Assembly (NCBI RefSeq): GCF_902459465.1
Contig: NC_047079.1
Span: 7,502,001-7,566,000 of the forward strand
Reading direction: 5' to 3'
Source: Asterias rubens
Lineage: Eukaryota
DNA length: 64,000 nucleotides
Below the pieces are notes generated by a model that saw only the letters and a program-made list of their open reading frames with translations, was not told the DNA's origin and searched no databases. Position 1 is the first letter of the stretch; each line of letters opens with the position of its first letter. This document shows, one piece after another, positions 3,321 through 52,407 of the stretch. Both the position numbers and the translations under genes were made by a program.

Positions 3321-5259
3321 TCAGCTGTGGAGAGATTAAACACCAATTTGTTGTCTTCTTCTTTTTATGTATTTTTTTATATTTTTTTATAGTTGATTAT
3401 TGGATTAAGAAGGGCCCAAATAGGCACTTGTGCCCATTTTTTAATAAATAGTGTAACATAATAGCAGAGAAGGTAATTAAAAGTTGTTAGATAATGTTCT
3501 TATGGTGACCCTACGTTTTAGGTTATTGACATTCAAATAGCCATCAGTTCTAAAAAATTAAAAAAAAAATCCCTAGGCTTTTGAAGTATTAGGGTATTAA
3601 TGGAAAAAATTTGCCAATCCCGAAAAATGAACATTAGTCAGCCACCAACAAACACTATTGGTACAAATTGCCCATGGTGTTATGGCCTTGAAAATCACTT
3701 TCACGCTGTAAACGGTCTTTGAACTCAGGTGAAGGCAGTGGCCATGGATGCTCTGGTTGACCGCCAAAACCAAGGAGGAAATAAACATACAACAACCGAG
3801 AGCTATTCTTCGTCACATGATGATGTCATGAGACCAGGGTCACCTGATAATAAACCGATTGTATCGCGCGGTGCCGTGTTTGCTCGCGTAAATTTGGAAC
3901 TTGCGCGACAAAGCTAGAGCGCAGTATTTTGCTGACTTGCTTTCAGTAAAACCAATTTCTAGGTTGGTTCTTAATTAATTCATGTGACAATGCGCTAGAA
4001 AATGGACTGGAAAACAAATTCAAGTGAAATTTAGCCATCAGTAGCTTGCGCGCGCAAATGAAATATACGTATGCACTGCCAATTATCAACCTCGTTTGCA
4101 TGGTTAGTAAATCGTCGAACACATAGCGCTAGGAATAGCTTGGCAAATTAAAAACACCCTTGGAATCGAGCTTGTTTTAAGGTCACGTAAGGGTCACCAG
4201 TCAGTTGTCTCTAAAACTGAGCTAAGGGTCCCGTGCGTGATTTGACGATGACACAGGCGGTGTGTGGTGTCTGACAAAATTCATCCCTGAATTATTTGAC
4301 GTTCGTTGAGTTGATATGACAATGTAAAGAATTGATTTCTGTGACTGTTTCCGATAATAATGAGTAGCATAAACGAAGGTGAAAGCAAAGGAGGAAACAG
4401 TAAAAGGTAAGGGTTAATTTATGAATGCCAGCCTTCGGCCCCCTACTCGATCGACGTACCGTCGTACGGTCTTGCAGATTGGCCTTGGCCCTTGCCCTTG
4501 GTTTTACCTGTATCGTTATTCTTTTGGGTTTACAACTTTTTAAATGATATGAAATTGTTAAGCTGGCATGTTGTGTGTTGACTTTAGTTTGGGAGTTCAT
4601 GGTAGTTAAAACACGAATATTTACACCACACTTTTCCACTATTAACACACTTTGTCATTACTTAATTTTAAAAAAAACTACACTACAGACTGCAAACAAA
4701 AGTGTGGACTGAGTCAGCTTTCTTCAAGTTCAAAGTTTCATTCATTCAACAACACAGCCATTCGTGTAAATCAAGTTCGGAGCGATTTCATTTCTATTTC
4801 ATCATCATAATTATTTATTATTGAAAACAACACATGACGATTGATACAACTTGGACAAATATTAACCAGAATTAGAAAGAGCATCATTCTGAACATGAAT
4901 AAAAGTAATTAAACGCAGATTCAAACGACATGCAGCAGTCACTCCAGTTCAAGCTCTCTCGAAAGGTACACACAGGGCCAGGCCACTTTTTTCGCCCTAA
5001 ATTTAGCTTTGGTCACTTGAATAATTTGATAACTTCAATTTCCATTTTTATAAGCTTTCATCCCAGCATATGGAACCACAGTCAAGTAGGATTCACTTGG
5101 GATTAAGATTCTCGTTCATCTTTATCTGTTCATTGATTCTCTGACCAGAGGTACGTTCATTCCAACTACCTTCAACCTACATTCTCAAACAGCCGTAACA
5201 ATGTTCCTCTCCCCTTTTTCCATTTTAGGCTGACGCTGTGGTTAAAAAAAGAAACAGAC

Positions 5260-8200
5260 ATGCAACGAGCCGGCATGAATGAAAAATCACCGCTCCTAAG
5301 GTATCGATTGGACAGCCAAGATCACAGTGTCGAGGTACCGGACAATGATGGCAACCATGAAGTTCATGGCGCTGGATCTACCCGTCATCTAACGACATTC
5401 TTCGGCGTTTTTGTGCCATGTGTGCTGTCTATGTTCAGCGTAATCTTGTTTTTGAGAGTCGGTAAGTGGCATGTCTTAGTATTTTTTAGGAATAAAACAT
5501 CTGTCCCCTTATAAATGTTGGAGTATTAGTTTGGTAGTCAAAACATTTACAATTCTGATAGCAACAAGAATTAAGAAATATTACCAGTTGGTTTTTATTT
5601 TTTAGAGTGAACATTTTTTATTTTTTGTTTTTTATTTTTTTAAATTTCATTTACCCTTCACTATGTGTGATAAACACCTGTAGCTTACTCAGTCCGTCTT
5701 TGGCTGAAAAAAAAAATCCCAATACCTGGATGGGGTTCCATGGTTTGCCCTTTCAGTGACTAGCCAGCAGGACAAGGGCCTAACTTCATGGCTCTTCTTA
5801 TACTGTAAGCAAAGAAATCAGGGAATTCCACGCTTACATGAAAGCATATTTCACAGGTTAGCAGTGAATGTTTGATTTGACTTGCGTTCTCCATGTTCTT
5901 CGCTGACATAGCTAGCGCAGAAATTTGGCAACTGCCCTGTAAGCAAAGATTGGTGATCGTAAGCACAGAGTTTGACAGTAAGCAAAGCCATGAAATTGGG
6001 CGCAGCTGGCTTGTCATTTTGCTACTCCATCAGCTTTATAGTTCATAATTCCTATTAGCGAGACTTTAAAATAACAGCGAGACTTCAAGACTTCATAATA
6101 GCGAGACTTCAAAATTCTTATGTCTGTCTCTCTCAGGTTACGCTATCGGTGAGAGCGGCTTGTTACAGTCTCTGGGTATGTTTGCTTTGGGTTATTTCAT
6201 CGTCTTGCTCACTGTTCTCTCCATCTGTGCCATTTCCACCAATGGAGCCATCGAAGGAGGAGGAGCATACTGTATCCTTTAAGGCACTGAAGATTTCTCA
6301 GAATTTGTCTTGAATTCTCCTTAACAAGTCTTTATATGTTCTTGAGGAAGTAAAGCACTTCACCAAAGGGAGAAAGAAACAACACATAATTATTATCTGT
6401 GTCCAAACCTGTAGTTTTGTATTTCAGTGCACATACAGTGTAGTTTCCCAAAGGGATGTTTCTGTGAATTGCAACTCAGGTTCACTACACTACACTGTGT
6501 AGTGTAGAAAAAATGAGTTCCGACCCTTTGGGAAACTTTCAATAGTTTGCAAGAGGGAATTTCCTGTCATTGGAGTCGAGAACAGGGACCCAATTTTGTA
6601 GTGCTATTTTGGGCTAAGAATTCACATGCACCGATTCTGATTGGTATCCTGCTAATTGTTGCTAAGCACAGAACTTGTAAACAAAGTTGTCTGCAAGCAG
6701 CTGTATGTAATTGGGCCCAGATTGTGAACAATGACGCCTGTATCACATGATGATGTACACAATACCATGATCCTGATCGACCTTTGACCCAATCACCACT
6801 ACTGGTACAAAGATTAGAGATCAGAGTTTGTTCTCTGAGCTAGCCGCTACCAAAGTCTGTCCTACTTGAGATAATTTTTATCGATTGGTCATAAATTATC
6901 ATGTAAACAATTGTTCAACAGGTACCAGTCTGAAAATTTGGTATTTAGTTGTTAAGGATTAAGACAGAATGCAAGACCCTTTATGCAACCTGTATTTAAA
7001 AGACCTGTTTGATTCAGACATTGTAGGCCTATTGTTTGTTTTCAAGTGATTATTGTTGTCCATGAACTCAAAATTCACATTGTTATCTGGGGTCATAGGC
7101 TTATGTTGATAAAAACCTTAAAAAACAAATAAAATGAATATGACACACAATGGCTTCCAATCAAACCCACATTGACCCACTTTCTAACCCACATTGACCC
7201 ACTTTCTAACCTTTCATGCATTGCCAAACATTTCTTGCTGAAGTAAGATAAAAAAGGGAACAATTCAATTTAATGTAAAAATCTTCCTTGAAACTGTTTC
7301 CTTGTATTTTGAACAGCCATAGAAATATATCAGGGGAAAAACAATTTTTATGGAATTAATTTTACGTTCCAATTTATTGTAAATCCTGAAATAAGATACA
7401 TTTAAAAAAGGTCAACTGTGTTTTTGTTTTTTTAACACAGATTCTTTTCTTCAGTTATTGCCAGTATCTAAACCCGTCCCTAAAAATAAAAGTTCAGATG
7501 CATATTTTTTTGGTGGAAATTATTTCTTTGTAACGAAAATTGACCTTAATTTGAGTTCATCAGTTATGATCAGCAGAGCTTTAGGACCAGAATTCGGAGG
7601 AAGTATTGGAGTCATGTTCTTCATCGCTAACGTATTCTCCTCAGCGCTTTATTGCATCGGCTTTGTAGAGGCTATTATGGATAACTTTGGAATTGGAGGT
7701 AAGATTTTAGGTCAGAAGTTTCTGCAAAGCTAACTGGAAAAATAGTAATTATTAATTATAAATTGGGATGATGTCCTGATTTCTTAAGGATGTGGCTACC
7801 TGATTGTCAGACTGCATCAAGCTTGGATCTTAATTCAAGTGTCATGGCAACCCACAATCTGTTTGATTAGAATACCAGTCAACTAGAATCTGGTGCTCTA
7901 GACTGGTCATCATGGAGACTTCGAGTTTCAGATTATTTTGTCTGGTACCCTGTATTTGCTTCTAAACCAAAGACTTTGATTTACGTTGATTTTGTTTTCA
8001 CAGGAGCACTTCTCGTTGACAGACAGAGCGGACTTCCTATCGACCTTTGGTGGCCATTTTTGTACTCCTCTATCGTCCTCTTCTTCTGTCTCAGCGTCTG
8101 CCTCATCGGAGCCGGGATGTTTGCCCGTACCTCCTTCCTCATCTTCTTGGTTGTCATGGCAACACTCGTAACGGTGATTGTGAGTTTCTTCACCAAGCCA

Positions 8201-11200
8201 GCAGGGGATATGCCGATCCCGCACAACAATCCAATTCATAATGTGACGTCTAACGCTTCGTATACCGGCTTCAAATGGACTACGCTACAGAGCAATCTGT
8301 ACGGTGAGTATGCCAATACTTTAAGGATTTAAATGCGACACCACTAGTCTCGGTTTATAGATCTTATGGTACATGACGTCGTCAGAGTCGAGAGTAATGT
8401 ATTGAGAGAGTTGCGACAAAGAGGGACCAGTTTTCTTCGATGATGTGGTTGCTGGAGGCCATTTTGGAACCAGATGCTGCACAACCACATTGGCAGACTA
8501 GTATGGCACCTTGTATACGCCAATGTGTTTTTTGGACACAAAGTGACTTCTAATTGCAAGTTCCCATAACTCTCTCAATCTGGCTTTGGATATTGTTTGT
8601 GGAGGGTGCCAACTCAGATTACCATCTCATATAAACATTTCACTTTCTCTTTCAATTTCCGCAGAGGACAATATTCCTGACTATACGACAGGCAAGGATG
8701 TGAATTTCCTTGTAGTGTTCGCCGTGTTGTTCAATGGATGCACAGGAATCATGGCTGGAGCCAATATGTCGGGTCAGTAAAGCCGATTGTGCCCCTGATA
8801 GTTTTGAAAAAGTTAGGGTTAAGTTTTTTTTGTCCTGATTTTACAGATGCTTCTGTCATGTCTGTAGATGTTTGACCAGCTGGGAGGCCAATTTCATGAA
8901 GCCTGTAAACACAAATACTTGCTAAGCACAGAATAGTACTGCTGAGCAGAAACTCTTTACCAGCCAAAATTACATTAAGTTTGCATTGTTGTGGCTTATT
9001 TTTTGCTTAGCCCTTATGAAATTGGGCCCAGGTCTTACCCCTGGAGTGCGTTGTGGTGTTGCACGTCCATTCAGTCCAGGGTATTGGACTCAAGTTCTGA
9101 TCGCTTATTTATCAGAAAATGAGTTCATGTTTCTCAAATATATTAGGGTTGTTGTCTGTTCTTGTATGCTGCAGTTGACTGTCAGAGATGTAGTTAGTAC
9201 CTTGTTTGAGTGGATTTAGCTAAAATGGCTGGACGGTTTTTGCCATTTTTTCAACAAGTTGACACTCAGCTGGAACTTTAACTAGTGATTTTAATACATT
9301 ATTATCATAATTATGTTGACAAAAAAAATCAGCATTTTGTTGACAAAAAATCTGTTGAAATGTTTGTAGGTGAGTTGAAGAACCCAGGTAGATCGATTCC
9401 CAGGGGCACTCTAGGAGCTTGTCTCTTTACTGGATTGATTTACGCCTTAGTAGCGTTCCTCGTTAGCGCAACCTGCTCAAGGTAAGACTAAGATTCGCCC
9501 ATCTCTAGATTTTTCTTGTTGTTCTTGTTGTTTTGCTTTTTATGACAGTAGTTCATTCTGATTGAAATGTTTAAGGTATCGTAAAGAATTGGTAAGGATA
9601 AACAACATAATTGCTTAATTTCAATCTGAAAGCCTACTTAGTTTGAAGTTCCTACCACAACAAAATAATAATAATAATTTTCCTATACATATAAAAAAAG
9701 TCATATATTTGAGAAAACTAGGTGAAAACCCGACTAAAAAAAACGCAACAGCTGATTTTGGTTGTTACAACCGAAACTAAGTTTCCTTGCTTAAAATTCT
9801 GCATGGTGTTTCACTATTTTTTGGAAAGAAAGTTTGTTGGCTAAAGTTGTCATCTAAATTCCCCTTCTCAACTCTTGTTCATATTCAGAGAACTTCTGCA
9901 GAATTCTTACGGCTTTCTGCAGCAGATTAATATCTTTCCACCGGGTGTGGTTGTCGGAATCCTAGTAGTCTCTTTATCAGCCGCTCTTACAACTCTCATT
10001 GGAGCATCTCGAGTCCTCCAAGCCATCGCTAAGGATGCTGTATTCGGTAAGTTCCTTAAAGACACTGGACACTATTAGTAATTGTCAAAGACCAGTCTTC
10101 TCACTTGGTGTATCTCAAATTATGCATTTTGGGATATTTGTTGACAGCTGCTCAGCAAGAGGATTTGGTGTTAATAACAACTTCCTTTGAGTTGACTAAA
10201 ACATAATATTTACAGGTTCCATATGGTGGAACAACTGTGTAAAAGTTGGGGGTCGGCCTATCGGTATCTTTCCTTGCCTTCCACCTCTAGGACCCTGGTT
10301 CGAATCTTACCGGGGGCACTATGTGGATTGAGTTTTCAATCTCTACCTGACTGCCTGGGTTTCCCCCTGGATTAGTCCTCCCACATCTGAAACAAACATC
10401 TAAAACTGAAAAAAAAAAATTGCTGTGATAAATTTTGTTAATGATTACTGATTAGTATTTGACAGTATGATCAATTAAAAAAAAAATTACCAACTATTTT
10501 CTTTTCTGACGTTCTCGTTTTTCAAGGTGTTATTCTTCTGCCAGTACACAAAGGGATCACAAAGGATGGTAATCCCATTGTTGCAGTTCTTGTCTCTTGG
10601 TTTCTTGTCCAGGTATATACAACCAATGCAAATATTGTTTTTAACAAATTAATAGTGTGAACTTATTTTTATATAACTTGTATATTTGGTATTGCCGTAA
10701 CACCATGTATGTATCTACTTGCTTGGTAATTATGATTATAAACTCATCTGAAGATTACTTAAATAGTTACAAATATTTTGTGCTAATTTATCTTGCCAAA
10801 ACAGCTTGTTCTATTGATGGGATCATTGAACACCATCGCTCCCTTGGTCACCATTTTCTTCTTGCTGTCATACACGGCCACCAACTTGGCTTGTATGGCC
10901 ATGCATGTTGCATCAGCCCCGAACTTTAGGTAAAGTGGTTTGAGAAAAAATTGTATCTGATATTTTGACAAGTAAAAGTATAGTTATCTCTACTTAATTA
11001 GGTTTAGCATTAAGGGTTTATATACCCTTTATAGATAAAGTTTTTGGTCGTGGCATGAATCCCTACCCACTGTCAGGGCTCATTGTGAGGGAAGATGAAT
11101 GTAGAGCGTAAACTAGGTCATAAACAGGCTTTAAACTACTGTGAATGAAGATGTATGTACATCCAAACCTAGATCCTAAACCAGAGCAAACCTAGACCCT

Positions 11201-14200
11201 AAACCAGTTCTGAAAACAAACCCAACACTAGAACCATCGTTCCAAAAAGTTCCTTGATGTTGACTGTTTTGCTTCTTCTTGCCCATGCCACCTTCTCCAG
11301 GCCGTCCTTCACGTACTTCTCATGGCACACATCGCTTCTTGGGATCGTGTGTTGTCTGGTCATGATGTTCCTCATCAATCCACTCTGGGCATCCATCAGC
11401 ATCGTTGTCTTCATCCTCCTCTTTATCATCATCTCGTTCCGCATCAGTGAATCGGACTGGGGTTACATCACACAGGCGCTCATCTTTCATCAAGTGAGTG
11501 GATTTTTATATTAATTTTAGTTTGACCCTTACACCGATGAGTGTTAGCAGTGTATTGACCCCTTGTACGCACATCACACGCTCACCATTTTGAATAACCC
11601 ACGGTGACATTGACCAGGTTATTCTGATGATGACGTGTGGTGAATTGGGTCAATACTCGGTACTTTCATCAGTCGCTCTGTGAACAAAATCACAGGCATA
11701 TTACTTGTGTGGGATTGGAACCCACGACCTTTGCAGTTGTTCATGTCCAGTGTTCATGTTCAACTGTAGTGTCTTACCAACTAGTCCACTGAGATTGCCC
11801 GGTAGGTAGAGGCAGTCATCTGTGTCTTGAAATCAAATCGGTTTCTTAATCTGGAGGTCATTGGTTCTAGTCCTGTTGCAGTCAATTTTTCTTTGTTCAA
11901 ACCCAAACTATCTGAAATCAATCAAGTCATAAACAAAGGACCATGGTAAACAACTCAAATTTGTTGGGTTAAAATATTTCCTTTTTCTTGTCGGCAGGTT
12001 CGTAAATATTTACTACGTCTTGACGTCAGAAAAGATCACGTCAAGTTCTGGCGCCCTCAGATGCTCCTACTAGTTGCGAATCCTCGTTCGTGCTGTGAAC
12101 TCATCAGATTCGTCAACGACATGAAGAAGAGTGGATTGTATATTCTGGGTCACGTCAAACGAGGTCAGAAAAAGAATTAATTTATGAAATATTTTGCCAT
12201 TTTGTGAAGCCTAATTAACTTTAAAAATATAAATTGTTATGAAGTTAAATGTTTTTGTTATTTAAGAGTGCGTTGTCCATGTTTCATGCTATGATTCAAT
12301 GTATCTGGATATTTCAATATTGTTTGTTTTTACCCAATACTGTGGTGTGTATTAAGCCCTGTATACTCTTCTTACTTTTCTGAGCTCTGTGAAAAATCCA
12401 AAGGCATATCACTGGGTTGGGATTCAAACCCACGACCATTTTATTTCTGACTAACAAAACCACCAAGCTAGCCCAGTAGCTAGAGGCAGTTCAAATCCTA
12501 TGTGTTGACTGCGGGTTCTGCAATGATCTAATAGGTGTTAGTTTTGCATCAGGGATATAAGCTGTTATACAATTTTGATTTAAGTTACAAAAGCTGTTAA
12601 GAAATTGTTTACAAATTGTTTGAACATTATTGTGATTTTTATTGTTGATACCATTTTAAACATTTTTTGTAAGCTACTTGAAAAGTGTTCAGAAACTATT
12701 TAGAAACTGTTTTGAAACTATTTTGAAACTTTTTAAAGACTATTCAAAAACTTTGTTGAAACTAATTTGAAATTCGTCAAAAACGGTTTATAAACATTTC
12801 CAAAACTATTTTGAAACTGTTCAGAAACTAGGTTGAACACTAAAGAATCCCTTGCCACATACTTTAGCTAGTTTTAAAGCACAGCACTCAAATTGGAATT
12901 TTTAATAGGTGGGCCATGTGGTGCTTTTCCTGGCTGGTCCAGAATTTTAACCTTTTTCTTTTTTCTATATTGGCTTGTTGTAAAGATTTTGCGCTGTTGT
13001 CGTCTGTCCGTAGTTTTTATTTAAATTTGGCTGTTTTTCTATTTTAAATAATGCTCTTAATCATTTAGTATTTATAAATATATATTTTATATTTTAGAAT
13101 ACAATTTTAAAATTTTGATTTGTTTGTAGTTGCTGGGCACCTCTGAAAAACAGTGTTTCACTGAGAGGTTATATAAGAGGGTATATAAGAAATAAATAAA
13201 TAAACTATTTAGAATCTATATAGGATTTGAGGTATTGCATGGTGAGGTATCAATATATATTTGGTTTGCGGTAACACCATGTGTGTATCTACTTGCCATG
13301 TAGAGTTTGTTCTTAGAGAACTGTCTTTATTCTACTACTGCGGAGTAGATTTACCGGATGTTCGGGAGACTTTTCAGTTCTGAAAAGAACTGTCCTGCTT
13401 TTTAGAAGCTATTCAATATATATTCATAACCTGTACTTGTGAACTATTAACAATAACTCATCCTTACAACTTTTCTTCAAGGTGTTTTGGATGAGGGTTA
13501 CTCCGATCCTGTCCAGAAGGAATACCCAGCATGGATCGTCCTGGTAGAGAAACTTAAAGTGAAAGCATTTACTGAACTGACTCTCGCTCCAACGATTCGG
13601 GAAGGAGCTCAACATCTCATGAGGATTTCAGGACTTGGAGGTAAGGAGAAAGCTGAGTTTCTGTTAAGTAATAATTTTACGGAAAATTATTTTGAAAATA
13701 AAGGGAAATCTGATATTTTGTGGCGTGTCAAAAAGACAGAATAGTTTAACGCTTCCTCTAGTTAATAAATATTTGGTTTATTTTCTTGTAGGTATGAAAC
13801 CAAATACAATAATTCTAGGTTTCTACGACAGCTGCCCATCCAAAGATTCATTCGATAAATGCAAAGTGACGAATAACCATGGCAACATATACGGAACAGA
13901 AGATTCAGGCATTGAGGAAGAGAGAGGAGATCCGTTGAATGCCTTTGAGCCCGTCAGACAGTTCAATAGTCCAAACAGACTGTCCATCGAGGAATATGTT
14001 ATGATCATCAGCGACAGCATCCGATTAAGGAAGAACGTCTGCCTCATGCGTTACTTCAGTAAGTTTGACCGGGATGCCATCGCTGCTAGCAAGACCCCGG
14101 CGTTCATCAATGTCTGGCCCATCAACTTCTTCAAGCCGGAGACCAGCGGGTACCTGGATACTGCATGTATCTTCCTATTACAGCTTGCCTGCGTCCTCCA

Positions 14201-14645
14201 TATGGTCCGTGTCTGGAAGAAGCACACCTTACTACGAGTGTTCCTGTGCAATGGTGCCGATGATGACAGCTCCATCAGCAAGCACAGACGAGAGAAAATG
14301 GAGAAGTTTCTAAATGAGTTGCGCATCAAGGCCACGATCATCATGGTCAGCAACAGCAACATCCAGCCGTTTGCCGTTATGAAGGATGACATGGGTGCTA
14401 GTAGTGACCACGGCCATGCCCAGTTGGTTTACTCCCAGGTCTCCGATACGTACATTCAAGAAGTCAACACTATGATCAAGAATTACTCAAAGAACACCGC
14501 TGTGAACTTCTGTTACTTACCGCTACCTCCAACAGATTCCACTCAGCAAGCTGATTACATGCGACATCTAGATGCGCTGACCTTTGACCTGCCCCCAACC
14601 GTTCTTGTTCACGGTATACAAGAAGTAACATGTACAGCACTCTAG
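5260..14645 (+). CDS. SLC12A9: Solute carrier family 12 member 9 (cation-chloride cotransporter family), 13 coding exons, 910 aa
   Basis: Exons 5260-5461, 6137-6271, 7564-7698, 8004-8303, 8665-8772, 9370-9481, 9889-10046, 10527-10612, 10805-10929, 11301-11493, 11998-12163, 13482-13640, 13792-14645. All introns are GT-AG with matching phases; total 2733 nt. Motifs [84 protein letters not shown] and C-terminal [17 protein letters not shown] are characteristic of SLC12A9 (human 914 aa). Confidence 0.96.
5776..6003. mobile_element. MITE family with GGGCCCAATTTCAT-type terminal inverted repeats
   Basis: gggcctaacttcatg...catgaaattgggcgc. Related copies at 8886-9029, 30139-30382 and 34251-34491. 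Confidence 0.75.
6272..7563 (+). other. U12-type (minor spliceosome) GT-AG intron in SLC12A9
   Basis: 5' site GTATCCTTT at 6272 matches the U12 consensus RTATCCTTT. Branch-like CCTTAAT at 7544-7550 lies 11 nt before the terminal AG, with no polypyrimidine tract. Splicing restores GGAY-F-MISR. Confidence 0.88.
12692..12834. repeat. Degenerate 11-bp tandem repeat (GAAACTATTTT-like, 13 units)
   Basis: gaaactattta gaaactgtttt gaaactatttt gaaacttttta ... gaaactgttca gaaactaggtt, with an exact 11-nt period. Confidence 0.8.
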
Positions 14646-16058
14646 AAGACGTCGTGTCAAAGTTCATACAGATTCCTTTTATGCATCTAATGCTTTTATA
14701 TTTGTAATTATTTTGTACTGTGCCTTTACATTTTATTTATGATAATGATATTAATTAAAGCATTTTTTTCAAGGACATGTCTTTTTTTTTCTAGTTTGGC
14801 TACTCAGAAAAGGCTTTCACCATTAGTTGAAAAATAGAAAAACCAAAATATTTTGAGGGAAAAAGAGTGACTTGTTTTGGTGAAAACTTGAATTGAAATT
14901 ACTCAATTAGTGACAGAACAAAAAAGATCTTGTTGTAAATTGGAATGAGGACCAACCGTTTAATGACTATTTAAAGCCAATGGCCTTGAACTACGTCTTC
15001 ACTTCTTATCAGCCATTTGTTCCCTTTTGTAAAGAATGCATCTATGACAGGCCTGGGATTTTATCATTTAGAGGGCTAGGCCATTTTCTTAAAGGCAAAA
15101 TTTTTGTTTTGATAAACAAAATGGGGAACCATCGAACATTTTTGGTGTAAAGTTGTAGGATCCAAGATCAGGCACCTGCCTAAACTCAAGTAAAGTTTAT
15201 TTGCTCAACAAATAGATGGGCTTTCGATCTTTCATCAAGGGCTTTTGTTTTGCTAACTCACTTTTTGAACCCTATATTTAATTTAAATTATGATATTGTG
15301 AGAATTAAAAACTTCAAGCTGTGTTGCAACTAACATCACAAAATATATAAAATTGTTCAATCAAATTGTGTCAATTTTAAATTGCAATTGCAACTTTTTG
15401 TTTTAGTATAACTTAAAAGTTTTGTTACGTTTCCCTTAGGTTATTTTATAACAAGACTATACCATGAAAGTAACTTTTTAAACAAGAAAAAAAAAATATA
15501 GACAAAAATAGAAAACATGAACTCTTTAAATATTGTTAATAAGGAAAGAAAATTGCTGCATATTATGAGATTTATCATCCATGGTATGGTAGAAAAGAAT
15601 AGCATTTGTAATAGCATTTTTTTTCTGCATATTATATTTTTTTGTAAATTTTGTTAAAACATAAGAAAACAAATTGAATTTAGAAAGGAGCATAAACTGT
15701 GGAGCAAATGTTAAACCTATTTTATGAACAACGTTTTGTGTTGGTATATATTTGAGATCAAAGAGCGAGTCACATTTTAAGGCAGTGTACAAACATTGCT
15801 CTGTAGAAATTTGTTGCCAGAGCCAAAATGTTCATACTGATGTGGTCGGAACCCTGTTTAAAAGCTGCAAATTCTCCCTGAATCTGCTATTTCCATGTTC
15901 TGATTATCAAATCTGAAAATCTATCTGATTATGGAAATCTTTTCACTATTTATGTTGAATGCAATTTAATTATCTCCCTGATATGAAAACAATCTTCCTG
16001 ATTGCAAGATAAAGGTGTTGGTAACTGTAGGTGTTGGTAACTGTAGCTATCTGTCTGA

Positions 16059-16420
16059 AGGCACTGGACACCTTTGGTACTTTGTCAAAAAGATTAGTAT
16101 TCTCACTTGGTGTATCCCAACATAGGCCCCTATGCATAAAATAACAAACCTGTGCAAATTTGGGCTCTATATTGGTCATCGAAATTGAAAGAAAATAATG
16201 AAAGAACAACACCTTGTTTCAGTAGGTGTACTCTCACATGTATGATAAAGGCTACAGGCCTGAAGTCTTTCTCAGATTCAAATACTTTAGTCCGAAATTA
16301 TCTCTCTAAAAAACTGTACGTTATTTACTTCATAGTGATTCATTTCTCACAATGTTTTACACTTACAACAGCTCTCCATTGCTCATTATTGTGAGTAACT
16401 ACCAAACGTGTCCAGTGCCT
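16059..16420. mobile_element. Non-autonomous DNA transposon (Kolobok-like), AGGCACTGGACAC TIR family
   Basis: aggcactggacac...gtgtccagtgcct. Same family as 61615-61969, with partial copies near 10065-10130 and 21240-21377. Confidence 0.75.
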
Positions 16421-19720: not shown

Positions 19721-22700
19721 TCAAATGCTTCTTTTCTGAGATCCTTGTCCTTTGTCAAATACGGGTGTCCTCCAGAACAGAAAGTGTGCTGGATTTGAAA
19801 AGGGAGGCAGAGAAAGTACAAATTAGGTAAAAAGGCCTTCGCTTTACTGAACAAAAACATAGAGCAATTGAACGATCGTGTAGGAAACTTTTAAAGTATA
19901 TTAAATTTGCATTGGGGATAAAAGATGTTTTACCCCTATGTCGACGTGTATCAAGCCCTGTATTTGGTGTTTTTCCCGAGTCCTTTGTCTGGTTAGACGG
20001 TTCTCTGGGTATAATAAAGAGGGTTCGATTTCCACCCGAGTTATGCCTGAGGATATTTTTCACGTGACTCTGGGAAAAGTTCTTATAGATACAGTGCTTT
20101 ACACAGATTTGGTAAAACAGAATTATAGGGTTAACTTGATTACTTTTACGGGTAATAATGTTATCTTTCGGAGGAGAGGTGTTTCTGAAAACAACTATTA
20201 GTGGTGAGATTCTCGACGTTTCAATCAGTATACGCTGTTGGTCTTAGTGTGAATGCTAGCTCATGTATTTTTTTTTAAACAATATTTTGTTTGTTTTTGT
20301 TTATGAAAAATGTTTATTCCAAAATTAAAAGCTATTTATTTTACTCTTCTAGACTTCTCCTAAGCATATTAATGAGCAGACAATTATTAATTATGGGTAT
20401 GCACAAGTTTGATTGTAAAGTTCTTTACTTTTTTTTTTAATCTCGATTGTTTAGTTTGTCCTTGAGAAAATTGACTCCCGTGAAAACAAAATATTTCTGA
20501 ATTTTACGGTAAAAATATTTGAAATATGGCTGGGGTTCATGTCCGGTTCCAATGACAATAAACAACTGAGAATATTTGTAGGCCCTGAACAGGATGCCAG
20601 TCCATCGCAGTTTACTCCCCAGCTCTCACCAATACCCATTTGTACTCCTGGGTGGAGAGAAGCAATTATGATAACATTCCTTGCTCAAGGACACAAGTGT
20701 CGCAACTAACCAGGCCCAGGATTCGAAGTCCATCAATCTAGACCGCTCAGCCACGACATTTAAAAAAGAACAGTTAGTGGTATAATCATTACCAGATGGT
20801 CCTTTAATAAAAATCATCTAGGCTAAACTGTATCTTTAAAACACTTTTTTTCACCGTAAATGCTGACGAGACGAAAGTACAGTCTATGTTGAAATAGACA
20901 CGACTCGACGCAAACCCAATACCCGCTCTTTTGATCACGTATCGATTTATCCATAGCCGCAAAGACGGCTTGTCTGGGAGACTACACACCAACCCACCCA
21001 CGTCAACACGAAACCGATCCCCTACTTCAGACTTTTGAAAATTCCAAATGATCCGATTACATCCCCCAAAATATTTATTTCACCGTCTGTTAAATATTCT
21101 TAATAATTCTTGAATAATTGAATACTTGAATCACTGGGAAAAGAACTTCAAAAGAGGTAAATTCTCACTCAACTAATATTAAAGACTTCAGCTGAAGCCT
21201 TTTGTTATGCATCCGAAAGCATACCAAGTAAGGGTGTTTTTATTTCATTATTCTTTTGCAAATTCGATGACAAATTGAGCCAAATGTTCATAGACTTGTT
21301 ATTTTATATGCATATTGGAATACATCAAGTGAGAATACTGGTCTTTGACAATTGCCAAAGGTGTCCAGTTCCTTTAAAGCGCGCTTGATGATATCTTTTA
21401 TGTGGAATCTTAAGGAATAGTAACTTCACTTCTAGCTGAATCCCAGTTGCACTTCCCTAGACACGTCAAGGTGGATTTACGGAAACTTTTTTTAAACATT
21501 TTATTTGAGCAAACGTGTCAAGCGACTCTCATGTCAAGCCAAAGTAATAAATGTCGAGTATCATAGAAAAGTGTGTCAACCCCCAACTTATCATTACAGC
21601 ATTTGGATCAGGATAAACCTCAGAAGCCCCTGGAGTTATTGGAAGTAACAAAGAAATTGGGGTTGGACAAATAAAGAATGTCCAACAACCCTAAGGATCC
21701 GTAAATGTTGTTCTTTCTTCGATGGTGAATGAAACGAGCGCGGTTGAGCAGACGTTAAAATAAGGCGCGAAATATCCGTGGGGTATTTTGTAGTAAAAAC
21801 ATATCACGGGGTGAATTCTTTAGATCTGAAATTTCCTTTTTGCGAAAGAAGGCGGTTTTGTATGTTATTCGCAATTAAATTTCTGGGTATAGTGAGATTG
21901 TTTTTCTTATTCAAAGAGTTGTTGACGAAAGAAGCTGGTATATGGGGCCAACCAATCAAAAGTTGTGTTAGAAATATTATATTAGTATGGCGCATATTAA
22001 TTTGTATTTGTGATGGAAGTTTTGTTCTAATGTTCATAAGAATAGAAAAAGAACTAAGTAATGTTTGCGTTCATGTCTTATAAAGACTGGTTGTTTTCAA
22101 GAAATATTATATTCATATTGTTTTACTCAACTCCTTTATAGGGCTAAGACTTTGACGAACATCCAGTTATCAATCTCCAACAACATTCGACAGAGAGAAG
22201 TGATTTGACCATTCTGTAAGTTTACGTAAAGTGAAATATTTCCGGTAGTATTTTTGTTACCGCGATTCACATGGCAGCATGCGTGATGGGTGACAACCAT
22301 TTCTTTTTGTTTCCTTTCTTTATCGGTACTTTCCTTCCCAGCAATGTGACAAGTTTTTTCTTTATCAAAATTATATATAGGCCTTTACTTTTTATAGTAA
22401 ACAAATAATAATAATGCAGAACGAGAACAATATCATTACATCATTGGTTTTATGGAAGAGTTAATAGAGGTTAATTATTTTTGCATTGTAAAATTTACGC
22501 GTACCGTTACACTACAAAAACGGTATTCTCTCCATACGTTATAATCCCGTTTTAAATCATTTCGGAGATAATTACGGTTGTGCGTTATCTGGTTCGTAAC
22601 TATTAAAGTAAACGTTTGAATTTGGTTGTAAGGAATTGTGTTCTTGTGGCTTTAAGTGCGTTTTAAGTAAGTTTTTGTGTGTATTTTGTGCTTTTAGAAA

Positions 22701-25700
22701 CTCAAACCATAATGCATTTCGCTGAATATGGTTGTGTATAATGTGATAATAAAGCAAGCTATATAGGCCTACTATAATTTGCGTGCCAGATGAAATAATC
22801 ATATAATAGTTTTTGCATCAAAATTCAGATAATTTTATGGTGATCCAAATCAATAAACGAGAATAATTTCCCGCTCTCACTATTCAACGATGAGACCTTA
22901 ACACATGATGCGACATAGGAGCTTCATCGTGTAAATCAAAATCTAAACCCGGTGTGGCGGTTTCAGTCTTCCGCCGTGTTCAGTTTTCCGGGTGACGTAG
23001 TCGCTCATATCAGCACGTTGTTCGAACGGTTTTAGCTTTCCGGCGTGTTCAGTTTTCCGGGTGACTTGTCAGATACCTCCGCGAGTACCCTGGCGAGCAC
23101 TGTAGTTCTCTCAGCAGTGACCCCACATTGTTTATATTACGATTCTTTTCTGTGTAGTTACATAATCTCTTGCCCCATCTTTACATGTATTCATGGGTAC
23201 AACTTCAGGCAGGTCACACTCTGCTTGCGTAAAAAACAACTCATACGATCCACGCGTTTGCCGCTAGTTGTACTCGACTCGTGGACGCCGCCATGACAGC
23301 TACCGGAGGGTAACGGATGACTCAATACGGCACTAAAATTGAACTACTTTCGCTTGCTGTGCGCAGGCATCGCATGACGTAATGCTACCGTGTTTGGTCA
23401 TTCGGAAAACTGAACACAGCGGAAAGTTGAAACCGCCACACCGGGACACGTTAAGGACTGACGGATGGGTTACGTGATTGGCCAAAGGCACCCATGTGAC
23501 CTTTATCCTTCCACGTCTTTGAATCAAAACCAAATTGTCCATTTTTATTAAAGATGTCATCAGATCGTCACGATAGACACGAAGGAAGGAGTGTAGAAAT
23601 GTCTCCAAGCTATGCAGCTTCTTGTCAATCGTCAAAATGTCATAAACTAATTTCCACTATTGTGAAATAATATTATTATCCACATTAGAGGAGTCGTTGT
23701 GAACGTGTATACGTGTGTTGGCCACAGGAAGAAAATTAACACAAGTATACCTGAATAGGGTTATCAGCCAAAATACAACGTATACACCATTTGCTATGGT
23801 TTCCTGCTTATTTTTTGCTAAGCAGAAACATTTTACCACTAATATCTGTTTAAGCAGCTCAACGAAATTTGTCTCTGTGTTTAACCTGCATGCATATTTT
23901 AAAGTTTAATTTAAACTAATTTATATACCATATGTATAATTCTGTAAACTAAAAGTTTCTGCGAAGCAAAAGTCACCAATAAGGTCACCCAAGAGAATCC
24001 GTCGGTGAAATGCATCTACGTAATCTCTCTGCGATTCCCATTTAACGTACATTATCTTGATTCAAAGAGCGTAAGAATAAACTGTAGTCCAGCAACCTAA
24101 TGCACTTTAGCTTGATTCAAAACAGTATGTTTTTGCCTGCGCTCTCATGAGAAATGTCATCAGCATTGCCAATAACTAACAGAATAAAGGGAAAAAATCC
24201 AGCAATCATACAAACAAAACTATTTGCTAACAAGACTTTATCGGGAGATTTAAAATGAAAGAAGCCGAAACCGGAAATGACGATTTTCATTTTCCATTTT
24301 ACCATTACATTTTGGTAAAAAACCGAAAAACTAAAACAGTTTAAGTATTTGCTCTTCGTATTAAATCGATCTTACTACGGTTTTTGTTGTTCATTTTTCG
24401 AGATATCCTATTTCCAGCACTGCCTGTAAATATTTTAAAGCATTTTCTCAAAAACTTTCTCTCGAATCTTCCTTTCTACTGACGCAAGACCCACTTTCCA
24501 TTAGACTTAATTCAGCCGCTTAATCTTACTGCCGGTAGGGTTTCCCATTACCCTGTACGCACATCAGCCTTCAGATGAATTAGCTGTAACCGTAGTAGAG
24601 ACTAATAACGGTAAAAGCCCTAGTAACGTACGTACAGGCGCATTTGTTTTAATTATCATCATATTGAAAGAATTAGGTTTTAACCTATATTATGGAAAGG
24701 AAGTTGGTGTTAGATTCATATAAGACTTAGGCTATGCATGTTTGAACAAATTAAGTAGGGTTCGGTGAGACCATGTAATCAATCTATTTTGTGATTAGTG
24801 GTGGCTCTGAGAAGAGCTGGTTCCTTTATTAATTTGAGTTACCTATACGTACATTGTTGTTAGTAAGCTGCTCTTGTAAATTCTACTCGACTAGTCTCCT
24901 CACCACAAATATTACTCTTTCTTATAATCCAGAAACGTTCAAGTTTATTACTTGAATGTTATGACCCGAGGAAATACATGAAAGGGAAATTAAATAAATG
25001 ATTCAACTTTCAGTAATTGAAAGGAAATGATTGCGGCGTTTCTTGGGAGAAAAGAGCGGGTCTTTTTGTTTTATCTCGTTCGTCAAAGTATTTATTTTAT
25101 ATTTTATTAATCGTGATTTCATTTCATGATTCAGTTTTTTTTATGATTTAATTTCTTTTTAAAGAAACCGGGGTGGATATCACAAAGAGTTAGGACTAGT
25201 CTTATCTCGAGTTAGGACCAGTTACTCGTCCTAATTAGGACTATCCATGCAATTTGTATATCTCTTAGGACTAGTCTTAGGACTAGTCCTAACTATGTGA
25301 AACCGACCCCAGTACACTTATCGAAAAGAGAAGGGGTTCGCCCCGGTATTCCTGGTTTGATCGGAACTTGGCAGCATACTGCGCCACAGCACCTTGTAAA
25401 CCATTCATGTGGTGATATATAGCATAGACCTCATAATTCAAACGTATAGTCCCACATCCTTGAATGAAAGAACTGTACGTTAAAGCACCTTGAGCGACAC
25501 TGAACGGTTTTTGTTTGTAATGAAACTTTCTAAAAACAGATATTTTGGAGGTACCTTTCATGTCGATGTTTGATATAGGCCTAATGCAAACGATGACTAT
25601 TATGAGCAACTCAATACACACGCCATACGGCATAAATTCAGCATTAGTTACTAAACCTCATCAATATTTAAAAAGGGCATGGTTAATCTTACATTTTCTT

Positions 25701-28088
25701 TTTGAAACTCGTTGTACGTCATCTTCATTAGGCGTGTCCATGTCTTCTCTTAACAAGACCAGGGCATCCAGTAGCAGGTCTACCGTCCTTCTTTGCCATA
25801 GCCCGGGGGATGTGGCTGCTGGTCTTGCAACCATGTCGTACGGGAGGTTCTCTGAGTTGTAGACAAAAAAAAGAGGAAAACAAATCATCATATTTTCTCA
25901 GAATTTCTTTTTATTTGCAACTTTCTGAATAATTATTGGTTAAATTAAAAAATGCAAACATCGTGGCAAAAAAGCCGAATTGTGGATGCATTACAAAGAT
26001 TTTTTTTAACAAATTAAGCAGAAGGATTGAATCGGTGTGTAGGCCTGTTTAAAACAAAATCTGTTGGAACTCTGATTATTCAGAAAGTGATGAAGAGATT
26101 TTTTTGTAGAAAATAAACAAAAATAACTTTCTGCTTTTCGTTAAAGAAAACAAAATTAAAACGCCAAGTGCCTTTACCTCCGTGACTCGTTTTTGTCGGC
26201 ATTAAACTTTGATCGATAACTAATTTTTGTTAAAATAAACGAGGATTACAATTGCCTGTTCATTTTAAAATGAAATCTTTAATATTGGATAAAAAAAAAA
26301 AAAAAAAATAACTGCCCTTTTTTAAGTACCTCTAAACAATTTGACATTTTCTTTTAAGGTTTTATATTCATTTCACGTTTTTGAGCTAATGGAACTATGC
26401 AGTATTCATTGTAGGTTATATCTGTTGTCGAAAGTCAGAAGAAAAATGCACTGTTTGCACGAAATAAAAATACATTTTTACATCTTTGAGAAGATATATT
26501 CTCGTCTTAGGGTCTGCTGATATAAATAATTTAAAAACACACAAATCAAAATTATCTTAGAGGTAAATATGGCTATAGGGTAGTTCAGTAGTAGATTACG
26601 TTTATCCGGAGGGTGTTGGTTCAAATCCACCATAGTCACTTTTCTTTGTTCAAACCAAAATTAACTGCGACATAATGACTGTTTTGTTTTTGGTTTGTTG
26701 TTTTCTTTGACCAAGTGAATCCTAAACAAAGTCACTGAGGTGAAGTTTTTCACCCAGCTGAACAGGCTAAACAAAGTTTCGCAGACGACTGAATGTTTTT
26801 CCTATTTGCGTTGATATGAGGATATGGAATCTATACACAAATTTAAATATTTGATAAGTAAATCAATCAGTTCTTCCTTAAAGGTTATTTTGTGGAGTCA
26901 GCTATGCGTATGGTTTTATGGTATGGGCGATACAGAATAATTAATGCTCCACTGAAACATGAACAAAGGGAATTTTAAGTCTCCTCTTTTTATTCTGTGA
27001 TCAAAAGATATCTTTAATGCACAAATGTTTCTCAGAAATTAAACAAAATTGTGGACAAATTTTAGGTAATTACTGAAACTCTAAAGGCTGACCAATTAGT
27101 TTAATTAGCGCGTAGAAAGACCACAACTCAGAGTATACAATCTTTTCAGGGTTAATTGAAAAATGTTCAATATTGATTTGTACAATGCACATAGAGGACT
27201 TAGCCATCAGGCTCACTTAAAAACTTAAATTCAGAGAATCTCTCACTAGGTAAATTGCTCTTATTGACCAGTCATTCCCACTAAGCATTAGTCGGATGAA
27301 ATGAGAAACTAATGACCGTCTAATCCAAACAATGCCACTTGTTGACGGAGGTTGTTGTCCTAAGACGCTAATCTGAATGCAAATTAATGTTTTCAACCGT
27401 CCACTTTAAATACCGACCAAGATTGTACAACAACAAATCAAAAGGTTGGCTTTGTTTTACACACTGCGTTCACGGTGTGGAGAAAATTTCATGACAAATT
27501 TCTCCAAAATGAAAAGTTGAGCGCTGCCACTCGTAATTTAATCAAATCTTATAAGATGATTATGAATATTGGAAATAAGTTCATCTATTGTTTCGAGTAC
27601 CTACTAACAAAATAACAACTTTTGAAATGAATTTGACGGCGATCAGAGCACACTGATCGGTACGTCGAGTTTCTCACATCATCTTTTTAGAATCCTACTG
27701 CCGCTCCGTTTTGAACCGACTACAGTTTACAATAAATCCGTCAAGTAAACCAAAAAAGGACAAAAACGCGACTTGTCTTGTTTCTAGTAAAAATAAATCT
27801 TTGGCAAGTGAGGTCAAGCAGAAATCCCTTCACACAATATTTAAAAATCACATCCATTTGGTGAAACTGATTATTTGAACAAAAGCGCACCTCAAATTCA
27901 ATCAAATTATTGTCAAAAAAAAAGATTAAGGATTGTGTAAAAAGAAAAGGAGTAAGTGACTAAGATGCTTTCTTACCTTCTTCCGAATAAGGCGTTTCCA
28001 TTGTGCTAGCTGATCGTGTGAGTGTCGATATAACTACAGCAACCATTGCTAAAAGCACGCAAATTCTTGCGCTAGTCGTTCCCGCCAT
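19721..28088 (-). CDS. Putative secreted neuropeptide precursor (112 aa), 3 coding exons, family unassigned
   Basis: Exons 28088-27977 (donor GTAAGA), 25851-25693 (acceptor ...tttgtctacaactcag, donor GTAAGA) and 19788-19721 (branch CTAAT plus ctttctctgcctcccttttcaaatccag). Both introns are phase 1; total 339 nt. Protein MAGTTSARICVLLAMVAVVISTLTRSASTMETPYSEEENLPYDMVARPAATSPGLWQRRTVDLLLDALVLLREDMDTPNEDDVQRVSKRKSHFLFWRTPVFDKGQGSQKRSI has a hydrophobic signal peptide, acidic spacer and RR/KR sites. Exons 1-2 are well supported; exon 3 is my best acceptor candidate. Confidence 0.75.
20600..20757 (-). mobile_element. tRNA-headed SINE with a CORE/Meta-like central domain
   Basis: Minus strand reads gtcgtggctgagcggtctag...ggacttcgaatcctggg (A/B-box-like), then cttgtgtccttgagcaagg...tctctccacccaggagtacaaatgggta. 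Confidence 0.6.
22948..23445. mobile_element. ~500-bp element with ~49-bp terminal inverted repeats
   Basis: cccggtgtggcggtttcagtcttccgccgtgttcagttttccgggtgac versus gtcattcggaaaactgaacacagcggaaagttgaaaccgccacaccggg. An internal direct copy of part of the TIR lies at 23040-23065. Confidence 0.8.
25318..25505 (+). mobile_element. SINE body fragment with a Nin/Deu-domain-like core
   Basis: aaaagagaaggggttcgccccggt..cctgg...tgcgccacagcaccttgtaaacc resembles, from memory, the conserved central domain of DeuSINE/Nin-SINE families; not database-checked. Confidence 0.45.
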
Positions 28089-28208
28089 TTTCCGTAAAGT
28101 TGTCGTCTGCTCTTGGTATCTGCTATGGTTGATACACAAATCTGGTGGACATACGGCTTGGATCACTGTACTCCGAGTTAATGAACTTCTCTCTTTGGCT
28201 CAAAGTGT

Positions 28209-28634
28209 ATAATGACCGAAGCTACGGCCGAGGGAGCGGTTTTTATGCGGAGACTACGTTAGGCTCCTCCTCAACTCGCAACTACAAACAAAAAAACTGT
28301 GCGTGAGTTGTTTTTGCTGTCAGAAGAGTCCCCGGGCGGCGACTTCACGGACAAAAGATAACTAGCCTGTTCTTGGACGGAGGAATGAGTTCGTGTCGTA
28401 ATTGCTAAAGCAGCGTGTTTCGTTTTTTGCATCTGATGGAGTGGTTAACGTTTGGTGATCGCAGGCGACATTTTAATGAACATCTTGCAGGTTTTTTTTC
28501 CTTTTTTTTCTTCTTCATGCCCACGCTGCTGCAAAACGTCTAAGTTACGGATGATCTGATTGGCTGGAGGGGTTCCGGTGTCACACACACGGATGTACCT
28601 GTGGTTTCCATTGGTTCACAGCGGTATGACGTCA
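28209..28634 (-). promoter_or_regulatory. Candidate promoter of the neuropeptide-precursor gene
   Basis: On the minus strand: Inr-like TCATTAT (A at 28213), TATA-like CATAAAAA at 28247-28240, E-box CAGATG at 28435-28430, CCAAT at 28563-28559 and a perfect CRE TGACGTCA at 28627-28634. Confidence 0.5.
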
Positions 28635-36482: not shown

Positions 36483-36907
36483 TGTAGGCTGTAGACTTTG
36501 ACTGCCCTGTATAAACTGACTCTATGTAACGGAGGGGGCAACTTCGTTGTGGGCAACAAGTTGCTGAGGCCTGTGGGGCGAGAACTGGTATTCGATTTGA
36601 GCATCGGGCCCCTTGCACACAACGGCCCGCGCTGGATGTATGAGTTTGTGGGAATACCAGTCATCTCGCCCCCAGCAAACACGCCCACTGCAAAGTCGGT
36701 CCCCCCCCCCCCCCCCCCCCCCAGCAAAGTCGACCACGACCGGCGCGGTGTGGTGGTGGCCTCAAATCGAAGAAGGATCGACACTGACAGTTACTGACGG
36801 TCGTTGTCGTGTTTTGGGGGCACGTGTTATTATCAGGTGGTCTCTACCACGTGTGCACACGATTCACAACCATTGATTCCATCATACATGCCTAATCCGG
36901 CTTGGAA

Positions 36908-42394
<5,487 letters not shown>

Positions 42395-43350
42395 GTTTAT
42401 TATGCACTTATTAATGTTGTAAACAGGATCGTAATAATTGGGGCAAGTTTAAGGAAGTTTCCCTTGTCCTATTTGTAATGTAATGCACCATGTTATTATA
42501 AATTGCATAATCGATCCAAGGACTAAATCTTATCGGAATTTTCTTCGCTGAAATCAACGACCATCTCAATTTTGTAAAATCTTGGAACTTGCTTGGATCT
42601 TGACTTGCCTTGAATGGTTCTCTTAGTTTCTGTATGTGGGAATTGATATCACCATAGTGAGTGATATATCATTCAAAAAATGACAAAAAGGAGTTTTGTT
42701 ATAAAGTCATCAACCACAAGGGAACCTGACTGGTTGAATGTTAAATAATTTTGAGTTCAACTTGCCAATCGAATCAGGCCCTGAAAGTTCCTCTTTTTAA
42801 ACGTAAACAATTAAAAAAAAACACCAAAGTACAATATCGACTTTGATAAAATGGCACTTGATTTATAGCAATTCCAGAATGATATAAAATCCAGACATCT
42901 TATAATATACATATTATATACAGAAATGTTATTCTACAGAATACATCTAAACAATAAATATGGGACCAATATAAAATAAAAGATAATGTTGAACTTGTAA
43001 TGAATATGTGCACAGACATACTATTCTTCCTTTAGTCTGATTTTCTATTTTTGTTTGACCTTGGGAGAAAAAAAAAAGAGTATTTTATTTACAAGGTCTG
43101 AAAACTTGTCAAGTATGTAAAGTCTCATATCCCCCCCCATGACAAAACATCAGTCATGTTTGTACATCAATTTATTAAGAATTTTCTTTAAGAAAATAAG
43201 TCACCAATATTTATTGTTCTGTTACAGATAAACGTTTTTGTGGAGTCTAGTAATTCTCACCAATGAACTTAACCAGGGGCAACTTTAAAAAGGTTAATAA
43301 TAATCAATAAGTAACTTAAAGTCACTTTTTAAATCTTAGAGCGAGTCTTA

Positions 43351-47373: not shown

Positions 47374-47485
47374 ATAGCATGGAGACCATACCTGATGTCG
47401 ACCAGGCAAAGGTTAGTAGAATCTAATTCATAGCATGGAGACAATACCTGATGTCGACCAGGCAAAGGTTAGTAGAATCTAATTC
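47374..47485 (+). repeat. 56-bp tandem duplication containing the PEX14 start-codon exon and its donor
   Basis: atagcATGgagac(c/a)atacctgatgtcgaccaggcaaag|GTtagtagaatctaattc, two copies with one mismatch. Confidence 0.95.
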
Positions 47486-52111: not shown

Positions 52112-52407
52112 ATATTCAACAAATAAATAAGGAGGAGCTAATAGAAAGTTGGACATTGCTAGATTGGACATATGAATAAACATTGTCAGATGAATCAAGT
52201 GAAGGTGTAACATTAATAGATGTACTAATCTTTGGGATAATTTATAACATAGTTTTGTTTACTATATGGTAAGCATTGTGTACTCGGTGCTTGTTGTAGT
52301 CCTATGGAAGAAAGGAGCAATTACAGGCATACTACTTGGGATAGATTCTAACCCAAGACCCCAGCATTAGAGCATAATATCTGTGGATCTTGGATCGTGA
52401 ATATAAT

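Follow-up and report, generated by a model that had tools for sequence, protein, structure and literature searches.

A 64,000-nt stretch of chromosome 18 of the starfish Asterias rubens (7,502,001–7,566,000), called the window here and numbered from its first base, carries on its minus strand the gene LOC117302119 (LR699109.1:7,521,721-7,530,088), which is flanked by exons of the NSUN5 type and the SLC12 type. An earlier note, prepared from the letters and a list of open reading frames (ORFs), had described at this place a hidden three-exon gene for a neuropeptide-type precursor. The gene turned out to be annotated already in RefSeq, as an uncharacterized protein in A. rubens, in Asterias amurensis, and in the starfish Acanthaster planci (crown-of-thorns). 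The evidence assembled below indicates, with a probability of roughly 0.8, that LOC117302119 is a genuine, strongly transcribed three-exon gene encoding a 112-aa preproprotein of the neuropeptide-precursor kind. It also supports regarding the gene as a new, or at least unnamed, lineage-restricted candidate precursor, annotated and with no family or function found.

The coding exons of LOC117302119 comprised 112, 159, and 68 nt (Table 1), adding up to 339 nt, i.e., 112 codons and a stop. Joined by two phase-1 splices as had been proposed, they gave a translation identical letter for letter to XP_033641809.1, the uncharacterized protein LOC117302119 of A. rubens (P0003). The two ORF fragments from which the gene had been pieced together (27960–28166 and 25661–25891) were both present in the ORF list on the minus strand; for exon 2 the prose of the earlier note gave only the range of the ORF, not that of the exon, whereas the junctions that it named, 27977/25851 and 25693/19788, were exact. 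Exon 1 was followed by a donor GT at 27976–27975 reading GTAAGA. Exon 2 read ENLPYDMVARP...WQRR-TVDLLLDALVLLREDMDTPNEDDVQRVS-KRK plus one base, ending in ...VSKRK, and was followed by a second GTAAGA. Exon 3, translated as (S)HFLFWRTPVFDKGQGSQKRSI and then a stop, was preceded by a strong pyrimidine tract and, upstream of it, a CTAAT; an unusually strong acceptor with a CTAAT branch had been noted here before. No paralogous exons or tandem copies of LOC117302119 were found in the 64-kb window.

Contigs of four public RNA runs, three of them denoted X1, X2, and X3 here, were aligned to positions 22300–28299 of the window. The joint 25851/27977 (GT..AG, minus strand) was present in X1, X2, and X3 with depths of 5199, 4458, and 4535, respectively. 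Contigs of X1 and X2 possessed a loose end at 25693, the reverse complement of which, CACACTTTCTGTTCTGGAGGACACCCGTAT, matched exactly the opening 30 bases of exon 3 (at 19788). Thus, both junctions predicted in the earlier note were observed, the first as a joint in three runs and the second through the loose end in two. No other joints out of exon 2 occurred within the aligned region in the four runs. Across the coding exons, the X3 contigs showed no differences from the window, and their summed depth was 1.7–3.9 × 10^5 in exons versus 5–50 in introns, which makes the transcript a very abundant one in this library of A. rubens. Five differences from the window were shared by X1 and X2 in exon 2; the genome of A. 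amurensis has the same five and two more near the contig ends.

A minor joint in X3, 25852/27979, was shifted by 1–2 bases with one extra letter and had a depth of 76, while the main joint reached 4535. It probably reflects noise from assembly or sequencing and not an alternative acceptor. An alternative 3′ exon or read-through was considered and rejected, since the 76-aa and 199-aa read-through ORFs (P0004) are genomic ORF calls only and the depth in intron 2 was about 43 in X3 versus more than 10^5 in the exons, a coverage that fits pre-mRNA. In each of the four runs, summed contig depths rose to 10^3–10^5 over two stretches of intron 2 (about 22900–23500 and 25100–25500). Partial matches and loose ends were numerous there, and the stretches look like dispersed repeat or transposon copies; a 114-aa ORF (25289–25633) sits inside one of them.

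A search with the exon-2 ORF recovered the A. amurensis orthologue, XP_071805524.1 (112 aa), in a cluster that also contained XP_033641809.1. An exhaustive phmmer search of 1.84 billion representative proteins returned only this Asterias cluster, a genomic read-through ORF, and one fragment, a 76-aa ORF homologous to exon 2 from another starfish read set (P0002/L001). The sole addition from a profile search was LOC110982700 of A. planci (116 aa, P0005), for which identity was 58% by this search and 55% by a later alignment. Its gene consists of exons of 112, 153, and 86 nt separated by two phase-1 GT-AG introns at the same positions as in A. rubens, and the three-exon, phase-1/phase-1 structure was also observed in the A. 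amurensis genome. The sharing of this structure is more than chance.

Aligned, the orthologues shared four conserved elements: the signal peptide, the segment WQRR-TVD[LI]LL[DE]AL.LLRE.M, one basic cluster, and SH[F/Y]LFWRTPV, after which come a variable tail and (R)KR-S-x. In the comparison of A. rubens with A. planci, dN was 0.31 and dS about 1.55 (saturated), and the C-terminal peptide was identical at 9 of 10 core positions but at only 4 of 12 positions in the tail. A. rubens and A. amurensis differed by six synonymous changes and one non-synonymous change, with exons 1 and 3 identical and flanking DNA 89–94% identical. Judged from these substitutions, the gene is under purifying selection, and its conservation extends at least over the forcipulatid and the valvatid starfish.

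The predicted protein has the architecture of a prohormone, and the signal peptide, acidic pro-region, and basic cleavage sites claimed for it all hold. The N-terminus encoded by exon 1 was hydrophobic, AlphaFold2 placed a helix over residues 4–29, and two published tables (PMC9971248, PMC9759900) list the A. planci orthologue as SignalP-positive, the second of them as the uncharacterized protein gbr.124.36. Three basic clusters, RR58-59, K[R]K88-90 (K[R]K/KK), and KR109-110 (KR/RKR), were conserved in A. rubens, A. amurensis, and A. planci, while the sole cysteine, at position 10, lay within the signal peptide in A. rubens and A. planci. In neither protein is a basic cluster preceded by Gly, so that an amidation signal is lacking. 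The AlphaFold2 model (mean pLDDT 50.6) contained helices at residues 4–29, 53–74, and 80–88, a disordered C-terminal peptide, and no confident globular fold. Protein-language-model neighbours of both orthologues were almost all neuropeptide-precursor clusters (DH31, NMS/NMU, UTS2B, NPFF, CCK/gastrin, PDH, and tachykinin), one other named cluster being a C11orf94/Frey homologue; no single family dominated, and the neighbours support the prohormone class but not a family.

The C-terminal peptide predicted for A. rubens was SHFLFWRTPVFDKGQGSQ (monoisotopic mass 2136.05, or 2264.15 with an N-terminal Lys) and that for A. planci GNSHYLFWRTPVITSRSLSEESS; should the single Lys be cut, a shorter product, SHFLFWRTPVFD (1550.77), would be expected. 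Because SH[F/Y]LFWRTPV is the most conserved stretch of the protein, it is most likely the receptor-binding peptide. The acidic segment between RR and KRK (monoisotopic mass 3183.60), which had been called a spacer and should not be discounted as no more than that, was itself conserved in the three species: its length was 28 residues in each, conserved RR and K[KR] lay on either side, and 17 of its 28 residues were identical between A. rubens and A. planci (counted by eye on the alignment). It is predicted to be helical, and this helix was the best-modelled part of the protein. Conceivably, the functional product is not the C-terminal peptide but this helical segment or the whole pro-protein, which would be either a further bioactive peptide or a granin-like protein for sorting or chaperoning in dense-core vesicles. 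We regard this as unlikely, given that the C-terminal core (9/10) is more strongly conserved than the 28-mer, that 112 aa is far smaller than the known granins, and that highly acidic helical spacers are common in ordinary neuropeptide precursors.

Nerve expression was documented for the A. planci orthologue. In Table S1 of PMC9971248, entry oki.91.50 is listed as 'Uncharacterized protein LOC110982700', positive for SignalP, with neither a Pfam domain nor a sea-urchin BLAST match reported, and the protein was identified in the radial nerve cord by reversed-phase high-performance liquid chromatography and mass spectrometry; the main text of that paper contains no discussion of LOC110982700. The transcript levels given there, in transcripts per million (TPM), were 5404 in female nerve and 13111 in male nerve, 406 in mouth, 115 in podia, 68 in spine, 10 in egg, 5 in oocyte, 4.5 in sensory tentacle, 3 in mid-gastrula, and 0 in testis, i.e., 5,404–13,111 TPM in nerve versus 0–406 in the other eight samples. 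The A. planci mRNA is thus nerve-restricted and one of the commonest transcripts of the radial nerve. The corresponding values in female and male nerve, respectively, were 11981 and 30316 TPM for the calcitonin-type precursor, 1538 and 3059 for the pedal-peptide-type 2 precursor, and 545 and 663 for the F-type SALMFamide precursor, so that the orthologue was expressed at about half the level of the first and several times the levels of the other two (PMC9971248). These data lend independent support to the neuropeptide-type reading of the earlier note. The share of nerve transcripts, 0.5–1.3%, is also within the range of abundant vesicle matrix proteins and to that extent suits the granin-like role mentioned above.

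Since the radial nerve cord contains non-neuronal cells too, the product might instead be a secreted protein outside neuronal signalling, for example a peptide with a defence or antimicrobial role, or a product of glia or epithelium. Many secreted defence proteins were found in the nerve cord by the Acanthaster study, and some expression of the orthologue was seen in mouth, podia, and spine. We consider this explanation highly improbable: the tissue profile runs parallel to those of neuropeptide precursors already known from that table (PMC9971248), the mature segments, being acidic or close to neutral, are not cationic and amphipathic, and the conserved dibasic sites as well as the language-model neighbours point to prohormones.

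Several observations weigh against LOC117302119 being a neuropeptide precursor. The lack of any predicted amidation, pyroglutamate, or disulfide is less typical of a stable bioactive peptide, and no relative beyond starfish was present among the 1.84 billion representative proteins. The nerve expression is that of the Acanthaster orthologue, and Table S1 of PMC9971248 gives the protein as identified without naming the peptides observed, so that cleavage is a prediction. Furthermore, the 28-mer is conserved along with the C-terminal core, and either may be the active product.

As to family, no Pfam entry, Somatostatin and UTS2B included, matched the A. rubens protein at E ≤ 1, and the only match of the A. 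planci protein at that limit was a sub-threshold one to the unrelated family TPR_NAA35. The peptide motif, locus, and accession numbers were not found in the main texts of the papers searched, which did not cover the 2017 Acanthaster neuropeptidome, where a prior listing is possible. That study (Smith et al. 2017, J Proteomics 165:61) reportedly names novel Acanthaster precursors as an ApNp series. In the 2023 nerve-cord paper of the same group, the protein was entered only as 'uncharacterized' (PMC9971248). The A. rubens catalogue of Semmens 2016 (PMC4772807) likewise contained no match in its text or supplement: no Arnp entry fitted in length or cleavage sites, and the motif strings were absent from the supplement. 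Within the reach of these searches, the earlier statement that no characterised family could be recognised is upheld. LOC117302119 resembles the echinoderm 'np' candidates (Arnp11-25, PMC4772807; ApNp series), which are nerve-cord-expressed precursors of about 100 aa with a signal peptide and dibasic sites, recognised from architecture alone and having no relatives outside the phylum. Unlike most of Arnp11-25, it lacks cysteines and an amidation signal, and none of them agrees with it in length and cleavage pattern.

Particular families were compared in turn. In the supplement of a crinoid paper, FWRT was present only inside unrelated vasopressin/oxytocin-type peptides. A CRH-like reading of the LLRE helix was rejected, only four residues matching by eye, and so was membership of the DH31/calcitonin family, which was the top language-model match but one on which 3 of the 10 best agreed and which the tool itself flagged as probably wrong. 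Neuromedin U ends in FLFRPRN-amide. The FLF-R-P string of LOC117302119 resembles this end, and NMU and NMS clusters were among the language-model neighbours; the neuromedin U/S assignment was rejected, however, since the motif is internal with no Gly and basic site after it, hence no amidated FxPRx end, and no match to PF02070 was obtained. With urotensin II and URP, LOC117302119 shares a phase-1 intron after the signal-peptide region, a mature peptide encoded on the last exon, an FW-basic motif, and the UTS2B language-model cluster, but the cyclic hexapeptide CFWKYC is missing, the peptide having no cysteines, and there was no match to PF28458. To our knowledge, no urotensin II-type system is known in echinoderms.

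A more specific version of the neuropeptide-precursor explanation is suggested by the FWRT core. Vertebrate somatostatin-14 contains the segment C-K-N-F-F-W-K-T, with which S-H-F-L-F-W-R-T of LOC117302119 matches up when the two are aligned on Trp, Ser91 then falling on the first Cys; the first Cys also lies five residues ahead of Trp in ArSS2, RAKNARCMADFWKGRGLVDC. The C-terminal peptide could accordingly be an offshoot, linear and free of cysteine, of the somatostatin/cortistatin/urotensin-II superfamily, one that arose by duplication on the ancestral somatostatin chromosome and may act on ArSSR1-3 or a related receptor, although we hold this to be decidedly unlikely. As in the somatostatin/cortistatin/ASTC-type precursors (ArSSP2, ArSSP1; PMC7536072, PMC8851493), a single candidate peptide with an aromatic-Trp-basic core (FWR vs FWK) is situated at the C-terminal end of the precursor after a basic site. 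The UII and URP genes possess a phase-1 intron in their N-terminal part as does LOC117302119, and UTS2B was among the language-model neighbours. However, both defining cysteines, and with them the disulfide ring, are missing in all species, Arg replaces Lys in the core (conserved FWR-T vs FWK/IWK), and the first intron is in phase 1 in A. rubens and A. planci instead of the phase 0 common to SS/ASTC-type genes. An extra KR-SI/RKR-SN tail is present, the Pfam search mentioned above gave no Somatostatin match, the language-model neighbours disagree on one family, and the shared motif amounts to 3–4 residues and was spotted after the fact.

Chromosomal context has also to be considered here. Human CORT lies about 25 kb from PEX14. 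In the window, a Pex14_N exon was detected at 48751–48837 (Pfam E = 9.5e-9), and the start of the annotated PEX14-like gene is 18 kb away from the ATG of LOC117302119. The SLC12A9-like, NSUN5-like, TMEM222-like, and PEX14-like genes are placed on A. rubens chromosome 18 at 7.506–7.554 Mb, and ArSS2, adjoining LIG3, on the same chromosome at 8.908–8.939 Mb (PMC8851493 Dataset S1), 1.38 Mb away from LOC117302119; as about 1/20 of the genes lie on that chromosome, this co-location is supportive only. A. rubens chromosome 18 shares 252 orthologues with amphioxus chromosome 14, on which the amphioxus somatostatin-like gene adjoins LIG3 (PMC8851493). PEX14, beside CASZ1, is 1.37 Mb away from that gene (PMC8851493) and not adjacent to it, and the A. 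rubens orthologues of the neighbours of human CORT are spread over chromosome 18 (CASZ1 at 3.27 Mb, DFF-like at 6.18 and 7.59 Mb, PEX14 at 7.55 Mb). With DFF-like and KIF1-like genes at 6.18–6.29 Mb of chromosome 18, and PEX14 and CASZ1 adjacent in amphioxus as in human, linkage has been kept while order is scrambled. The scrambled order together with the non-adjacent amphioxus PEX14 means that the PEX14 adjacency may be chance within a conserved linkage group. It was downgraded for this reason as evidence of cortistatin orthology (PMC8851493 Dataset S1). Taken together, LOC117302119 does belong to the somatostatin-bearing linkage group, but the case against somatostatin homology is stronger than the case for it. 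If the peptide were nevertheless a linear somatostatin/urotensin-II member, the FW-basic-Thr pharmacophore could work without a ring, echinoderms would gain a third somatostatin-related peptide, and a still-orphan receptor would have in SH[F/Y]LFWRTPV a candidate ligand.

For LOC117302119 as a neuropeptide precursor in the general sense, the likeliest reading is that of an ordinary prohormone of the regulated secretory pathway. Its splicing, conservation, and composition and the nerve expression of its orthologue are observed; processing, release, and receptor action of its product are inferred. The signal peptide would direct the protein into the endoplasmic reticulum, and the amphipathic acidic helix (about residues 53–74) may aid sorting into dense-core vesicles. 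Prohormone convertases and a carboxypeptidase would then cut at RR58-59, KRK88-90, and KR109-110, the expected products being an N-terminal acidic peptide (residues 29–57), the acidic 28-mer (60–87), and a non-amidated, linear C-terminal peptide. The last of these, carrying the conserved core, would be released by nerve-cord neurons and act on a putative receptor, while the helix of the 28-mer could serve as a sorting element or a second product.

Elsewhere in the window, the genes placed by published coordinates are listed in Table 1. Two tandem repeat arrays lie inside the span of the PEX14-like gene as given by those coordinates: one at 47374–48458, with units of 25, 65, and 115 bp at 47.8–48.5 kb, just upstream of the Pex14_N exon, and one at 49252–49978, where 6.3 copies of a 114-bp unit (95% matching) give rise to a spurious repetitive ORF of 253–259 aa. 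A 356-aa open frame at 54461–55528 on the plus strand, with no Pfam match, is located just before or at the start of LOC117302632, for which it may provide a large 5′ exon of low complexity.

Table 1 Features of LOC117302119 and neighbouring genes, in window positions
Feature	Position	Strand	Basis
5′ UTR, minimum extent; transcription start further upstream	28089..28299	-	X1, X2, X3 RNA contigs covering 27977-28169/28299, one extending beyond the end of the aligned stretch
Exon 1, coding part; ATG at 28088, 37 codons + 1 base; signal peptide and start of pro-region	27977..28088	-	Sequence, RNA contigs
Intron 1, 2125 nt, phase 1, GT..AG	25852..27976	-	Joint 25851/27977 in X1, X2, X3
Exon 2, 159 nt; acidic N-terminal pro-region, RR, acidic 28-mer, KRK, first base of Ser91	25693..25851	-	RNA pieces 25693-25851, alignment, predicted helix 53-74
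RR, codons 58-59	25787..25792	-	
Acidic helical 28-residue peptide, codons 60-87	25703..25786	-	
KRK	25694..25702	-	
Intron 2, 5904 nt, phase 1, GT..AG	19789..25692	-	Loose end at 25693 running on into exon 3
Exon 3, coding part; C-terminal peptide SHFLFWRTPVFDKGQGSQ, KR (19735-19730), dipeptide SI, stop TGA (19723-19721)	19721..19788	-	Sequence, RNA loose end, orthologues
Core SHFLFWRTPV	19760..19788 + base 25693	-	
SLC12A9-like	4194-16130	+	PMC8851493 Dataset S1, offset 7,502,000; Pfam SLC12
NSUN5-like rRNA methyltransferase	36785-42539	+	PMC8851493 Dataset S1; Pfam RsmB-F methyltransferase
TMEM222-like	42618-46303	-	PMC8851493 Dataset S1
PEX14-like	46481-52489	+	PMC8851493 Dataset S1; Pfam Pex14_N
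LOC117302632, long, uncharacterized	from ~55106	+	PMC8851493 Dataset S1

Among non-chordate deuterostomes, starfish serve as the main model of neuropeptide evolution, and a curated catalogue of precursors is available for A. rubens. That an abundant nerve transcript conserved across starfish orders was found with no name, family, or function thus marks a gap in a model system. The predicted peptides are directly testable on established A. rubens preparations and in receptor assays. The crown-of-thorns orthologue is of interest as well, nerve-cord peptides being under exploration for the control of that coral pest. If the somatostatin-like core were homologous rather than convergent, the gene would bear on the diversification of the somatostatin, urotensin, and allatostatin-C families.

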